Assembly (NCBI GenBank): GCA_977020255.1
Contig: CDROCS010000229.1
Coordinates: forward strand, 62,001-117,582
DNA length: 55,582 bases
Source of the DNA: Obrimoposthia wandeli
Taxonomy: Eukaryota
Direction of reading: 5' to 3'
The position numbers were made by a program, and so were the translations under genes. The notes under the pieces are model-generated. The model was not told the origin of the DNA, did not search any database, and saw only the letters and a list, made by a program, of their open reading frames with translations. This document shows positions 48,422 to 54,570 of the stretch, piece by piece. Within the stretch, counting starts at the first letter, position 1. Every line of letters begins with the position of its first letter.

Positions 48422-50330
48422 AATGTACACTAAGACATATCAAGTTTAATATCTAACTAATATTTTAAATAAATAACTACTTTCAAAGATATGATTCTTA
48501 TCTACCTTTCACCAAGGAAGAATGTCTAATTAGAAATGGCGCCCACTTAATCTTCAATTAGGGAACCTATATAGCTATAGGCCTGAATGCACCATGTTAT
48601 ACCAAGAATTGAAAAAAACTGATGACGTCTTTAAAAGAAATAATTGAGGAACAAGTAATATCTGGGAAACTGGAAGCACTTTTGAGTAGTCAACCATGGA
48701 TTTATTACATATTGGAGCAATAATAAATATAATTGTTCACCATTTTAGCGTAATAAAACTCACGTAATCAGCAAAAAATGTTAAAAGTAAAACTTATTAC
48801 AGCAATTCTATAAGATTATTTGTAAAATGTATGTGATATTTACGTTTGGTGGCATGGTAATTGAAAAATAATTTCTTGTTTGTACAGACTCATTGCTTAC
48901 CCAACATTAAATAGAAGCTCAATCTGAGTGCATTGATGTTCCTCAATATATAAAAATTACGTCTACATAACCTAGTATATATTGTAATGTAAGTCATTTT
49001 CTTTACTTAACACGTCCTTTCAATGAACCTAATGGGAGAAAAAAATTATAGAAATCAATTATTCAAAAATGCAATTTAAATTACATAAATTTTTAACTCA
49101 CTTTTGGCACAAATAGGTTTTATTTTTGCTTATTTTTATCGTAACATTTTCATCAGTAAAATTTTTATTATCTGGATCAAATACTCTGAAATATTTAGTG
49201 AGTGTTTATTGTGCATATGCACCATTTTAAGAGCAAGTTCAATTTGATCTTCTGGATCAATTTCCTAAATGAAAATATTTTAGAAATCATACTAAAATTA
49301 CTTCACAGGATAGCGTTAAGTGTTGTAGCTTAGCATAATTTCCAGTATTTAAGTCACATTGGTTTCGGAATCTAATAAAAATATTATTTCCTTCGATAAC
49401 AAATATATTAGACATTATAAAATGGTTAAGACTCTAATGAGTTTATTATATAACTTAAAATTTATTAGGAATTGGTATCAGGACTCGAGTTTTCACTGGA
49501 AAAAATGATTAGTCTAAATTAAAACCACATGATAATATAGATAAACTAGATATACATATACAAATATCTTTATAAATACACATATTTAAAACATATAATG
49601 CTCAGAACACTTGTCCCATACTAGCCAATTATAATAAAACTATTTGCATTTGATATAACAGAAACCTTAAGGAGATATTCCGTTCCAAAGTGAACTTTAC
49701 CATTTATTTTTCCTAAAAAAAGATATATTTCTAAATTTTTATCATATAGATCTCAGAATATCTCTATAAATAAACACATTTAAACTATAAAATGCTCAGA
49801 AATCATCCTGTCTGATTAGATGATTCCAATAAAACTATTTGCACTTGATATTTCACAAAAGGTACGGATATATTCTTTTCCAACGCGGTTCTATCATTAA
49901 TTTGACCAAAGATTTAATATATTTTCAGATTTTTCATCATATAGATCTCAATATAAAAAATTCAGTCTCTTTCTGTTAGTTTTATTTTGAATTTTATCCA
50001 AAAGTTAATAGAGGAGACGTTTTATAATATAAATACACAAATATTTTTGCGAATTCTGGTTTAGCCCTCACAATTAAGGATTTCATTTTAGATAAAATTT
50101 CATACGGCGATCAATAACAATTAGTATCCAATTTATTATTATGGGTAATTCTCAAATATAGATTCTCGCCGGATCAATAACAATTAGTATCCAATTTATT
50201 ATTATGGGTAATTCACAAATATAGATTCTCGAATATAGATTCAAATTTCACCACTTTATTAAACAGTTTAACTTTTTGGGATCAGATAATTTTTGTGCCT
50301 GTTTTCATATCATCCAACTGTTTTATACCA

Positions 50331-50903
50331 TGTATCAATAAGAGTGGGCAGAAACATCACAAAAACACATTCACGGAATCTGCTAACAAACACACGCACA
50401 CACAGAAACTGAAAAGGGCGATACACAATAATAATAATAAAATGGACACACACACACTGCATCGATAAAATTTGGGCACACACACATATAATGTCAGCAA
50501 TCCGGGGAAAAAATGGGCAGCGGAAAGAGAGGATTGTATGTCCAACTGTGCATGCACATCTCTGCCTTGGTAGCCACCATCCGAAGACGGTCGATCAGGA
50601 TGACGGGAAAACGATGGAGAAGGATGGCGGCAGAGAGTGTGCAGCCGGGATCCGCTGACCGTTGCCGACTGAACGAATGCCGACGGCGATCTGCCGCCAG
50701 GCTGGGAGACTGGGCGGAAAATTTTTCCATAAATCAATCTTATCTACATGCCGCCTTCCTGACGAGCCCGGCAGGGCGAAACGGGACCACCCCGTCGGAG
50801 GCTGAATTTGATAAACCTCCCTAATTGTGGGCACTTTAGATAATTTTATAAAATGTCAATTTAAATTGACTTTCTTAATTAATTATTAATTAATAACCCA
50901 ACA
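50331..50903 (+). mobile_element. LTR-like hammerhead-bearing module 1
   Basis: GC-richer block starting TGTATC and ending TAACCCAACA. Homologous to 53656-~54570 (minus) from ~50710 to its 3' end. The left boundary is inferred and no TSD was found. Confidence 0.5.
50753..50802 (+). ncRNA. Type I hammerhead ribozyme
   Basis: Stem I GCCUUC/GGAGGC, core CUGACGA, stem II GCCC-GGCA-GGGC, GAAA, stem III CGGG-ACCAC-CCCG. Predicted GUC cleavage after 50796. Confidence 0.93.
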
Positions 50904-53655
50904 ATCGTACAACCTGGAATCCGAAGACAACAACACTGGGTACTTCACGAGAAGCAAATCAACGGACGACAGAGGACAACCTCATAGAAATCGATCAATA
51001 TTGAACAAGGTTACAAGACCCGGCATTGGATAAAATACTCCAGCTATTGCATGGCATGGACATGTCCGACGTTTACCGGAGTGACGTTCGAAAATATATA
51101 ATTTATTTAATAAATAGTTTAATTTTAAATTCTAATAACAACTAAAGTAAATGTCAAAATAATTTTCAAGAAAACATCATGTTATATCAATTATCAGACA
51201 TTTTCTATAAATATAATCTTAAATTGAATCAAAAAATAATCTTTCAATAATTTTAGAAATGGCTTTTGATGGCGTTCACATGTTATGAACAATATAATGT
51301 ATTTATGTATGAAAAGTAAACTATTTAGTTCAGAAGGATTTTTATAGGTTAGATTACAGATTTAATATTATATGAAAAGTTTAATATTAAATTATTAATG
51401 TTTGCTAATATATTATATATTTTATTTATAATAAATGTTGTTTTAACTGCTTATTTGTATCTCAATTTTTGTTTTAAAAATAATTAAATTATACAAATAA
51501 TTTTGATTAACAATTGTTACATTTTTATTCTAAATATTTTAAAATATGTCAACTTTAATAAATTAAAATAAAATAATATTCATATGATAATCGATTTTTT
51601 GGTCTTAATATTAATATGACCGATTTCACATCAAAAGGTTGTCAGTGAAAACTCGAGTCCTTGTTGGTATAAATGTTCAACCTCAGCAGTTTTTTAAAAT
51701 TCTTAAAATTTGTATTTGAAATAAAACAATAAAAAATAAATAACCCTCACATGATATATATAATTTTGTAATACATAAATTGTATTTTTGGATATTTAAG
51801 AGGAGATGAATTAAACAACTCATGGATTTAGAAAATTTAACAACTAAGCAAAGAAAATATCTTTTTTATTAAAACTTTTTTTTTTCTTTTATTTACATAT
51901 TTTAGTAATTTTTGAATTTTTATCCTATTTTATTTAATTTCATAACTCTACTGACGATTAAACATTATGTGTAAGATGATTACTATTATTATTCATTTGA
52001 GAATTGCATCTCAAAAAGTATTTTATCAAAAATAAATTCATCAAAAAATCTTATATTTCTTCTATTTTCTATAAAAGGAATAAGCATGTTTTGTTTTCAA
52101 TGATTTAATTAAGATGATTATTTTAAGTTAGTGATATTGAAGCTCAAAATATTGAAAATGCTTATGAATCAAAGATTTAAAAAATCTATTCTTATTATTG
52201 TTTAAAAATTATAAATAACAATGATTCAACAATAATTTTTGTCTTTTCTTTTAGTTGTAAGTCCATTCATTTATATATTAGAGTAAATTGTATTGCAACT
52301 AAACTAATACGATATTTTACTTTCAATTAGACATTAGTTTAATACATGTATATGATTTCCAAATCCTTATGAGTCATTTTTAAATCATAGCACCTTTTTT
52401 TATTCAATGTGTTTTAATTTATTTTTCTCAAAACCTTATTTTGTATATATTTTTAATGATTTGTAATATACCAATAAGGTGAATTCATACAAAGAAAATG
52501 AGAGGACAATAAAAAAATCACATTTTATAAAACTTAACTTAAAATGTCAGAGAAAAAGGGTAAAAACTGAAACACTTTTTTCATTATAATATTGTAATCT
52601 TATTTATAATTTCTTTTAATGATAAATTTCATTCAGTACTTAAACACTCCATCACAGTTTATAGAAAAATACTGATATTATACTTTTACTTTTGGATCTA
52701 TTGTAAATGTAAGATATTTATTTTAAATGTTTTTTATTCAAATTAATGTTTTGCATTAAAATAAATTTTTCTATATTTTAATAAATCTCATTTTGTTTAA
52801 TCTTTGAAAATTAGTATTAATTTCAATAAGATATTTAACTAAATATAAAACTGTTTCATTTGATGATGGTCAGTAAACATCAGTTACCAAAATACATAGG
52901 TATGAAGTTGTTTACTATTTTCATAAAAAACAGTCATATAAAACAAATAATACTTCAAAATTGTTATATTTTTTTATTTCAATGTTAAGGAAAATTGAGA
53001 AATTGAAAATAAAATAAAATGTAACGTTACTTACTCAGTACTTATCATGTCACTTTTAATTAAATAAACAGATTTATCAATTACATATATTAAGAAATTG
53101 ACATATTGTGGAGAAAATATTATCATAACTACTCAGATGTTTTATGCATTATATGTAGATTTTTGTATTTTATGAAATCGTAGTTTATCATTTATTCTCT
53201 TTGTCAGCTACTCCTCATATCAAATAAACAGAAAAAATATGACTTTATTTGGCTTACAATTCAAACTGAGACATGATAATTGGGACCAGGCAGTGAAGAT
53301 AATTTATTTTGATAGATTTTTATAAAAATTATGAAGCCTAAACTGATGTGATGAAGATTTCTACACAAATATTTTATTTCAAATTCAACATTAAATGATT
53401 ATAATGGATTTATGGGATGAAACACCTAACACTGACTTAAATTTAAATAAGTTAGTAACAAAGCCGTACTCTTAAAAGTGCTAGGATTGTTTAAAAAAAC
53501 AAATCTAGGATTTGATTTCTATTGTATCTTTAATTATCTTTATATTATTAATTCAAAATTTATTTTTGCTGGTTTATTATTTAAATTAATCGTTTTATAT
53601 TTTAGACTTTTAAAATTTCTTATTAATATATTTTTTATCATAAAAAATATAAATA

Positions 53656-54570
53656 TGTTGGGTTTAGAATTTAATAAATTAGTCAATTTAAATTGACATT
53701 TAAAAAATTAATCTAAAGTGCCCACAATTAGGGAGAAATTCCATTTTAGCCTCCGACGGGGTAAAACCCCCGTTTCGCCCTACCGAGCTCATCAGGGAGG
53801 CGGCAGAACAAATGCATAAAAGAGAAAAGATAAGGAAGTACCTTTAGTTGAAAATTACCGCCCAGTAGCAGCGGTCTATCATCTCAGCCTTACTCCATCA
53901 TCATCCGGAGAAGGCATCAGCTTCATCATCGTCAACATCATCATCAACATCATGTGCGCACCATCTCAACTACAGCAGTGGCTGTAGTGACAGCAGCATC
54001 AATCGATCGTGTGATGTTGACTTGCTTCCATGTAGCTGTCTCGCTGTGGATTTTTTTTGTTTCGCATTTCAGCGAATGTGAATGTGTGCACGCTTTGCAC
54101 CGTTTCCCTCAGCTGCACATGTGTGTGGGCCGTGGATTATCGGTTTTCCCCATCTTCCCAAATTCTCTCTATCAGAGAAAATCACTCGGCCACACACTCA
54201 CCTGCCCAGTCCCCGCCTGTCTGTGCTAGACCTCCGAATCGTGACCTTATCTCGCTGGCATAGTTTCCGGCTGCATTTAACAGTACAGTCGTCTCCCAAT
54301 GGGTTTGGAGTTATCTCTGGACATGACGTCCTACTCGATCGGTTCCAGTGTATTAACAAATCCAGATCAGCAACAACTTCCAATAATGCCTGACACAATT
54401 ATTATCATATCTGACCCATTCAGCGTTGCCCTGACAAATCGATTTTACAATGTGTGTGTCTCTCTTTCTCGCTGGAATTCTGGATTGCCTGTGTTGTGTC
54501 TGCACTTGTACATTTTTATATATGCCACTGCCACAATAATTATGATCACAAAAAAAGAAAAAAGTTTATT
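53656..54570 (-). mobile_element. LTR-like hammerhead-bearing module 2
   Basis: Ends (minus strand) in AAACCCAACA at 53656 and shares the hammerhead and ~100 nt downstream with module 1. The far boundary is uncertain. Confidence 0.5.
53749..53801 (-). ncRNA. Type I hammerhead ribozyme
   Basis: Stem I GCCUCC/GGAGGC, core CUGAUGA, stem II GCUC-GGUA-GGGC, GAAA, stem III CGGGG-GUUUUA-CCCCG. Predicted GUC cleavage between 53755 and 53754. Confidence 0.93.

Follow-up and report, generated by a model that had tools for sequence, protein, structure and literature searches.

Does the pair of hammerhead ribozymes that face each other about 3 kb apart in a contig of Obrimoposthia wandeli represent a functional unit of an animal LTR element, and what could a self-cleaving RNA be doing there? 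We examined a window of 55,582 nucleotides (assembly GCA_977020255.1, contig CDROCS010000229.1, positions 62,001 to 117,582), in which a preliminary description had noted two intact, diverged and convergent type I hammerheads in LTR-like modules. Positions below are those of the window, and the features are as follows.

50113-50903, - strand (coding orientation): truncated LTR of the main "ACCAC" subfamily, with an intact U3 terminus TGTTGGGTT at 50903-50895; the U5 end and the rest of the element are missing.
50753-50802, + strand: type I hammerhead ribozyme, with predicted cleavage between C50796 and G50797.
50855-50870, no strand: perfect 16-nt palindrome GTCAATTTAAATTGAC between the ribozyme and the LTR edge, conserved in both copies and present in most of the genome copies that we listed.
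50895-50903, + strand: LTR terminus AACCCAACA (TGTTGGGTT on the coding strand), the integrase-type end.
50904-51080, no strand: flank belonging to an unrelated repeat, which we call X (at least 215 candidate places), into which the left LTR inserted; X continues on the other side at 49479-50112.
53656-54481, + strand (coding orientation): truncated LTR of a second subfamily, starting with TGTTGGGTT at 53656; homology to family copies stops at 54481 and no primer-binding site (PBS) follows.
53682-53697, no strand: the same 16-nt palindrome in the right LTR.
53749-53801, - strand: type I hammerhead ribozyme, with predicted cleavage between C53755 and G53754.

The observation itself is confirmed. 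In the left motif, helix I is GCCUUC/GGAGGC (6 bp, one U-G), the core is CUGACGA, helix II is GCCC-GGCA-GGGC followed by GAA, and helix III is ACGGG/CCCGU (5 bp counting A15.1-U16.1). In the right motif, read from 53801 to 53749, helix I is GCCUCC/GGAGGC, the core is CUGAUGA, helix II is GCUC-GGUA-GGGC (one U-G), and helix III is 6 bp. All conserved positions of the hammerhead core (C3-U4-G5-A6-N7-G8-A9, G12-A13-A14, A15.1-U16.1 and cleavage after H17) are present in both copies, helix I is open while helices II and III are capped by loops, and every difference between the copies keeps the fold. Each of the differences listed in the preliminary description is correct, and its helix III lengths of 4 and 5 bp equal our 5 and 6 if the A15.1-U16.1 pair is not counted. 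The minimum-energy fold of the right copy is the canonical three-way junction.

The Rfam Hammerhead_1 model (RF00163) aligns to both copies over its whole length (model positions 1-45), but at 25.3 bits (left) and 22.7 bits (right), which is below the gathering score of 34. Scans at the gathering threshold and at E up to 10 over 4.3 kb found no hammerhead, and only scans of 101 nt did. The Rfam alignments show 9 and 12 nt at the helix III loop, where the model has 2. Other hammerheads in this genome reach 38.5 bits, and the genome also has a U-rich-loop family. A model that we built scored the left and right copies at 80.3 and 87.2 bits, and a strict motif finder of our own found exactly these two in the window, against 0.01 expected in 300 block shuffles.

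The two copies are 81% identical in the ribozyme and 73% in the ~100 nt downstream, up to AACCCAACA (50895-50903; complement at 53656-53664), which lies 107 and 99 nt past the cleavage sites, while upstream of the ribozyme the identity is at background (52%). The cleavage sites are 2,958 bp apart and the ribozymes point at each other. However, BLAST of the left copy to the LTRs of six full-length elements covers only 50109-50903, and the left junction lies inside repeat X at a short GATC microhomology. We considered whether the window copies might be complete or solo LTRs and rejected this, because both lack the U5 terminus and a PBS. They are truncated LTRs of two subfamilies that inserted independently, head to head, so the convergent pair is not a functional unit and its layout is coincidence.

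To find what kind of element these LTRs come from, we looked at copies elsewhere in the 1.35-Gb genome. The boundary (TGTTGGG on the other strand) is a true integrase-type LTR terminus, and the same boundary with unrelated flanks was found in all copies examined. The module flanks 13-15-kb elements as direct repeats of 760-1290 bp that are 97.9-99.7% identical and 13-14 kb apart, with TGTT...AACA termini and perfect 4-bp target duplications in 5 of 5 elements. A tRNA primer-binding site, TGGTGAGCCCGATCC, lies directly after ...ATATAACA(T), that is, 0-1 nt after the LTR end, in 15 loci; a search for a corresponding tRNA found no tRNA gene in the window. One ORF of 2,039 aa contains Retrotrans_gag, Monjiviricetes_fusion (PF24664, residues 546-944), aspartyl protease, RVT_1, RNase H and integrase, so the domain order is PR-RT-RNaseH-IN with an envelope-like fusion glycoprotein in frame between gag and protease. 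The glycoprotein is also present in a second copy and in relatives. We conclude that these are Ty3/gypsy elements of the "Burro" type known from planarians, in a young and very abundant family. The Burro giant Gypsy elements (Grohme et al. 2018; Arkhipova & Yushenova 2019, PMC6431247) likewise have a mononegavirus-like fusion glycoprotein in frame between gag and pol and occur in thousands of copies in an AT-rich genome, but the copies here are shorter, and no hammerhead in Burro LTRs is mentioned in that paper or in any paper that our searches returned.

The known animal homes of type I hammerheads are Penelope-like elements (PLEs) and tandem non-LTR retrozymes. PLEs and Terminons with hammerheads in pseudo-LTRs (Cervera & de la Pena 2014, cited in PMC7761336 and PMC6431247) are also animal retroelements with type I hammerheads of unknown role in their terminal repeats. 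However, PLEs encode an RT with or without GIY-YIG, lack integrase-type LTR ends and a PBS, and carry minimal hammerheads lacking helix III that act as dimers. Here, Pfam finds RVT_1 with RNase H and an rve integrase and no GIY-YIG domain, the repeats are true LTRs, and the ribozyme is monomeric with a stable helix III of 5-6 bp, unlike the minimal PLE form (PMC7761336). Metazoan non-LTR retrozymes (Cervera & de la Pena 2020, PMC7229834; bioRxiv 10.64898/2026.07.22.740005) share the canonical type I hammerhead with a closed helix III and a high copy number in an invertebrate genome, but they are head-to-tail tandem repeats of 150-400 bp without LTR, PBS or PPT and are linked to PLEs. Here there is a single ribozyme per LTR in dispersed elements, and no tandem arrays were seen in the loci examined or among the first 100 genome hits. 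Both alternatives are refuted for the copies examined.

In the six elements with full sequence, all long ORFs lie on the strand opposite the ribozyme, which sits about 100 nt inside the U3 edge. The same antisense orientation holds at 911 LTR-internal junctions, where 378 ACCAC-type and 533 CUAACAA-type ribozymes are followed at 90-120 nt by the same internal 3' end. This orientation bears on the interpretation in the preliminary description, that this may be an animal family of ribozyme-bearing LTR elements whose RNA ends, or circles, are defined by self-cleavage. That interpretation is only partly supported. It is an animal family of true LTR elements whose LTRs carry a hammerhead, and the conditions set beforehand to refute it did not hold: the CCCAACA boundary is fixed, copies occur as paired direct LTRs with 4-bp duplications, and there is no link to Penelope RT/GIY-YIG ORFs or tandem retrozyme arrays. 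Definition of RNA ends or circles is not supported, since a ribozyme on the strand opposite the genes and the PBS cannot define the ends of the element's genomic RNA or make retrozyme-like template circles, and the two window copies are not one unit.

The system closest to that reading is the plant LTR retrozymes (Cervera et al. 2016, PMC4918200; review PMC7761336), which also have a hammerhead in each of two direct LTRs, 4-bp target duplications, a PBS and a link to Ty3/gypsy. The plant elements, however, are small, non-coding and non-autonomous, carry type III hammerheads in sense with the PBS/PPT, and give circular RNAs of 600-1000 nt. In our elements, which are 13-15 kb and coding, the hammerhead is type I and antisense, and RNA excised between two LTR ribozymes would be a 13-14-kb antisense molecule that the tRNA cannot prime. 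Among the first 100 genome hits, no same-strand pair is closer than 6.7 kb and 18 of 22 pairs lie 11.8-14.2 kb apart, so small non-coding retrozyme-like units were not seen, and the window pair is convergent rather than direct. We consider a retrozyme-like system, in which a unit-length RNA or a circle made from it serves retrotransposition, to be very unlikely.

Is the ribozyme maintained? The genome holds 2,319 exact matches to the intact motif, against 0 for the reversed control. Across six LTR types the hammerhead is the only LTR segment that is conserved, keeping 61-81% identity (shuffled maximum 60%), while the 150 nt upstream and the 100 nt downstream mostly drop to about the shuffled level (0.53-0.60), except downstream among the closest types. 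Changes on both sides are seen in 10 of 16 pairs, with compensatory changes in all three helices, and 94.6% of cells are paired, against 37-54% when partners are slid, although the alignment was fitted to the model and the copies are related, so the shuffle control overstates significance. G-U pairs, which are tolerated only on the ribozyme strand, outnumber A-C pairs 16 to 8.

One alternative is that the hammerhead is a passenger or fossil, captured once into the ancestral LTR, for instance from a PLE or a retrozyme, and persisting because it overlaps DNA-level U3 signals (integrase att region, enhancer). In its favor, the evidence for activity is from sequence alone, the adjacent box and palindrome (and the 100 nt next to the ribozyme generally) are also conserved among the closer subfamilies, so that DNA-level constraints in U3 could contribute, and two copies of a more diverged type carry C in place of U4 in the core, so either the core tolerates this or the fold persists without activity. 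In addition, related elements with 54-61% pol identity in five contigs from other assemblies show no hammerhead by our model or motif finder, although their LTRs are only partly covered, so the feature is lineage-specific. Against this, core nucleotides are invariant in the 2,319 copies of several loop types, the ribozyme remains a conserved island where both flanks have fallen to background, and a DNA-level signal would not preserve base pairing. We regard the passenger explanation as possible but unlikely. Exact-core scans of metagenome and viral contigs returned only GC-rich bacterial or phage hammerheads that share the same helix II, with no LTR context.

We also considered whether the ribozyme matures a functional antisense RNA, made from an antisense promoter in the LTR, with its 5' end set by self-cleavage, giving a regulatory RNA or an antisense-encoded protein. 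This would be comparable in layout to the antisense genes of some retroviruses, or to the 5' processing of non-LTR retrotransposon RNA by HDV-like ribozymes. The ribozyme does sit at a fixed distance from the LTR edge in several LTR types, and an antisense ORF of 145 aa, of the same length, is present in 3 of 6 elements. However, that ORF has no family match, overlaps the sense glycoprotein frame and is broken in the other three copies, and no conserved antisense ORF lies near the cleavage site, so in the absence of RNA evidence this explanation is doubtful. ORFs inside the LTRs are low-complexity and occur in several frames and on both strands, and one of 123 aa has no Pfam match, so we rejected them as genes. 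A possible post-cleavage hairpin between the helix I 3' strand and a downstream CCUCC box is predicted in only some types and is not better than shuffles, and we give it no weight.

What the sequences establish is that each motif is an intact type I hammerhead about 100 nt inside the U3 edge of an LTR, that these LTRs belong to the Burro-like family described above, that the ribozyme is antisense to the genes, and that the window copies inserted independently. Transcription of the antisense strand, cleavage and any benefit to the element are inferred. We believe that the most likely explanation, at a probability of roughly 50%, is that the ribozyme is kept by selection acting on RNA of the antisense strand and self-cleaves antisense transcripts, whether these start in the GC-rich part of the LTR or read in from flanking DNA. 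In this view, the cut in a 3' LTR would fall about 100 nt before such a transcript enters the body of the element, and in a 5' LTR about 100 nt before it leaves into host DNA, and would separate the capped 5' part from an uncapped 5'-OH antisense RNA. The most plausible benefit would be less stable or exportable antisense RNA that could pair with the genomic RNA. This benefit is uncertain, because the 5'-OH left by a hammerhead cut is a poor substrate for 5'-3' exonucleases.

A more far-reaching possibility, which we hold only tentatively, is that an autonomous, envelope-bearing endogenous retrovirus-like family of an animal has kept an active type I hammerhead on the antisense strand of U3 for its own benefit, as a built-in cutter that severs antisense or read-in transcripts at the LTR border and so blunts dsRNA- or piRNA-based silencing. 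That would be a new biological use of a self-cleaving ribozyme and the first ribozyme-armed autonomous LTR element. We found no published description, for any animal, of hammerheads in the LTRs of a retrovirus-like element on the strand opposite its genes.

The biological roles of most genomic hammerheads are still unknown, and the known retroelement cases are non-autonomous plant retrozymes, PLEs and tandem animal retrozymes. Here, thousands of intact ribozymes sit at a fixed place in the LTRs of autonomous, retrovirus-like elements, on the strand that does not encode the element. This gives a large natural set of variants, with several loop and helix versions, and a clear prediction that antisense LTR RNA ends exactly at C17|G1.1. 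If cleavage occurs, it would link self-cleaving ribozymes to the control of antisense transcription of retroviruses and transposons.

In the sequence we identified two complete hammerheads, which lie in modules that also contain a perfect 16-nt palindrome. We refer to the following features:

50753-50802, + strand, left hammerhead: helix I GCCUUC, core CUGACGA, helix II GCCC-GGCA-GGGC, GAA, helix III ACGGG-loop-CCCGU, C17, then GGAGGC closing helix I; predicted cleavage after C50796.
53801-53749, - strand, right hammerhead: the same plan with helix I GCCUCC, core CUGAUGA, helix II GCUC-GGUA-GGGC, and one more pair in helix III; predicted cleavage after C53755.
50855-50870 and 53682-53697, palindrome GTCAATTTAAATTGAC between the ribozyme and the LTR edge.

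The predicted cleavage sites are 2,958 bp apart and the two ribozymes point at each other. The Rfam Hammerhead_1 model aligns to both over its whole length, at 25.3 bits for the left copy and 22.7 bits for the right, in both cases below the gathering score of 34, and the alignments show 9 and 12 nt at the helix III loop, where the model has 2. Scans of the whole window with Rfam missed both copies. In contrast, a strict motif finder of our own (core, three helices, GUH) finds exactly these two in both strands of the window, against a mean of 0.01 in 300 block shuffles. The minimum-energy fold of the right copy is the canonical junction, while the left copy has a near-isoenergetic alternative. 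Alignment of the two modules confirms homology from the ribozyme to AACCCAACA and none upstream, so the preliminary description, which reported two intact, convergent hammerheads in modules that end at the same sequence, was correct in what it observed. The palindrome and a GGGCACTTTAGAT box are conserved between the ribozyme and the LTR edge in most genome copies, and could be U3 protein-binding sites. We also noted that in the 3' cleavage product of several LTR types (window 50797-50822) the helix I 3' strand (GGAGG) could pair instead with a conserved CCUCC about 15 nt downstream, and the types at loci L028 and L056 of our set have matching variants, but the predicted hairpin is weak and not better than shuffles.

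The 181-nt left module has at least 2,555 candidate places in this 1.35-Gb genome. The best hits come as same-strand pairs 12.5-19.3 kb apart, five of six of them at 12.5-13.9 kb, and we examined six such pairs. Each is flanked by direct repeats of 760-1,290 bp that are 97.9-99.7% identical. In the orientation of the ribozyme every repeat ends at AACCCAACA and starts with TGTTAT, so that on the other strand the repeat reads TGTTGGG...ATAACA, the usual inverted LTR termini. Five of five elements with both ends resolved have a perfect 4-bp target duplication (AATA, TATA, TTAT, TTAT, and TATA). Directly after ...ATATAACA(T) comes TGGTGAGCCCGATCC, whose complement ends in CCA as a tRNA does; this is a primer-binding site (PBS), seen in 15 loci.

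All long ORFs lie on the strand opposite the ribozyme. In one copy a single 2,039-aa ORF carries Retrotrans_gag, a Monjiviricetes-type fusion glycoprotein, aspartyl protease, RVT_1, RNase H and integrase, in that order. The glycoprotein is also present in a second copy, as well as in the closest database relatives, which have the same architecture at 54-61% pol identity. In the polyprotein of this family the mononegavirus-type fusion glycoprotein domain (PF24664) lies in frame between gag and protease (locus L044, 2878-8994, + strand; also locus L038, 787-2100, - strand), and a glycoprotein in frame between gag and pol is the hallmark already reported for the giant Burro Gypsy elements of planarians (PMC6431247). 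The host is therefore probably a triclad flatworm, an inference from the element type alone. On two contigs of an ENA assembly (L065 and L067), Burro-like gag-env-pol ORFs sit next to genes with bacterial-type domains (luciferase-like, Mnh antiporter, ABC transporter); these contigs may be chimeric.

The coding strand and the PBS both define the genomic-RNA strand, so the ribozyme is antisense. In coding orientation its complement occupies about positions 100-155 of U3. A TATAAA lies about 570 nt into the 760-nt LTR of one copy, which would place the sense start far downstream of the ribozyme, although this U3/R assignment is inference only.

An exact pattern for the intact motif, with helices II and III fixed and the loop free, matches 2,319 times in the genome, while the reversed control matches 0 times. 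Several helix III loop types occur: ACCAC, CUAACAA, CUUUUUU and GUUUUUA. Among the first 100 hits listed, 22 same-strand, same-type pairs lie 6.7-15.5 kb apart, 18 of them at 11.8-14.2 kb, and none is closer, so small retrozyme-like units and tandem arrays were not seen among these hits. On one contig (C46), two same-type pairs (6215/12925 and 30313/37024) are each spaced 6.71 kb apart, which could be a shorter derivative of the element or a local duplication. We found that 378 ACCAC-type and 533 CUAACAA-type ribozymes are followed at 90-120 nt by the same internal 3' end (ATCCTATGGG), again with 0 control matches, giving at least 911 3' LTRs in the same antisense arrangement. The CUUUUUU type lacks this junction and must belong to a family with a different interior. 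Six hammerheads in this genome, at C851:288413-288464 and five other places, pass the Rfam gathering score (35.8-38.5 bits).

The two copies in the window and their surroundings are arranged as follows:

50109-50903, left LTR; the only part that matches family LTRs.
49479-50112 and 50901-51661, an unrelated dispersed repeat (X, at least 215 candidate places) with long and internally deleted forms; the target of the left LTR insertion.
53656-54481, right LTR; starts precisely at TGTTGGG (53656) and loses homology at 54481.
53436-54237, an 802-bp stretch holding the right ribozyme and 220 bp of flank.

The TGTTGGG end of the left LTR abuts repeat X. In other copies of X, about 97 nt stand where the window has the 790-nt LTR fragment, and the left junction sits at a GATC microhomology. 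This is an integration followed by a deletion that removed the rest of the element. The right LTR has unrelated flanks at its start in seven family copies, and no PBS follows it. The 802-bp stretch is absent from a second contig of this assembly (C5129, locus L051), probably the other haplotype, and one contig of a public DNA run shows the same joint (53434 to 54238); it is probably an indel between haplotypes. Both window copies are therefore truncated LTRs of two subfamilies, placed head to head by chance, and the pair is not a unit.

Several lines of evidence support selection on the ribozyme. Across six LTR types, ribozyme identity is 61-81% (shuffled maximum 60%), while the 150 nt upstream and the 100 nt downstream mostly fall to about the shuffled level (0.53-0.60), except downstream among the closest types. 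On 21 distinct sequences found with a covariance model, 10 of 16 pairs change on both sides, and paired cells make up 94.6%, against 37-54% for slid partners; the alignment was fitted to the model and the sequences are related, so we consider this supportive rather than conclusive. Clear examples can be seen by eye: helix I GCCUCC/GGAGGC against AUCUCC/GGAGAU, helix II CCC/GGG against CUU/AAG, and helix III CGGG/CCCG against CCGG/CCGG. G-U pairs, which fit only the ribozyme strand, outnumber A-C pairs 16 to 8. The main rival explanation is a neutral passenger overlapping U3 DNA signals, and some observations do count against selection. Two copies of a distant, more diverged hammerhead-like type, at loci L006 (2773-2833, - strand) and L056 (988-1047, - strand), have C in place of core U4; this type keeps all three helices through compensatory changes, but its activity is doubtful; in L056 it lies about 75 nt from a CCCCAACA LTR-like end. 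In addition, five contigs with related elements from other assemblies carry no hammerhead.

Reviews and recent work place hammerheads in plant LTR retrozymes (type III, sense, non-coding), in Penelope-like elements and Terminons (minimal type I), and in tandem animal retrozymes, and state that animal retrozymes lack LTR, PBS and PPT (PMC7761336; bioRxiv 10.64898/2026.07.22.740005). Literature searches on hammerheads in combination with LTR retrotransposons, antisense orientation, gypsy elements or planarians returned no description of the arrangement seen here, within the incomplete body of papers that we could search. In metagenome and viral contigs (loci L070-L088), GC-rich bacterial or phage hammerheads (types I and III by eye) share the identical 24-nt core plus helix II (CUGAUGAG-CCCGGCAGGG-CGAAAC) with the animal LTR ribozyme, which is probably convergence on a favoured helix II.

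The preliminary description had inferred an animal family of ribozyme-bearing LTR elements in which self-cleavage defines the RNA ends or circles, and our results bear this out only in part. Hammerhead-bearing LTR retroelements are already known, but here they are in an animal, autonomous, and carry a hammerhead that is type I and antisense. The retrozyme or circle reading is disfavoured because the excised RNA would be antisense and could not be primed by the tRNA. While the anatomy, the orientation, the copy number and the conservation pattern are established by our analysis, the function of the ribozyme, including cleavage itself, is inferred from DNA sequence alone. A role in maturing a functional antisense RNA is a third possibility, besides the neutral passenger. 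In the reading that we prefer, the ribozyme acts on antisense LTR transcripts: in a 3' LTR it would cut about 100 nt before antisense RNA enters the body of the element, in a 5' LTR it would cut about 100 nt before the RNA leaves into host DNA, and the cut would uncouple the capped leader from a 5'-OH body. We think that the most likely value to the element would be in limiting stable antisense RNA.
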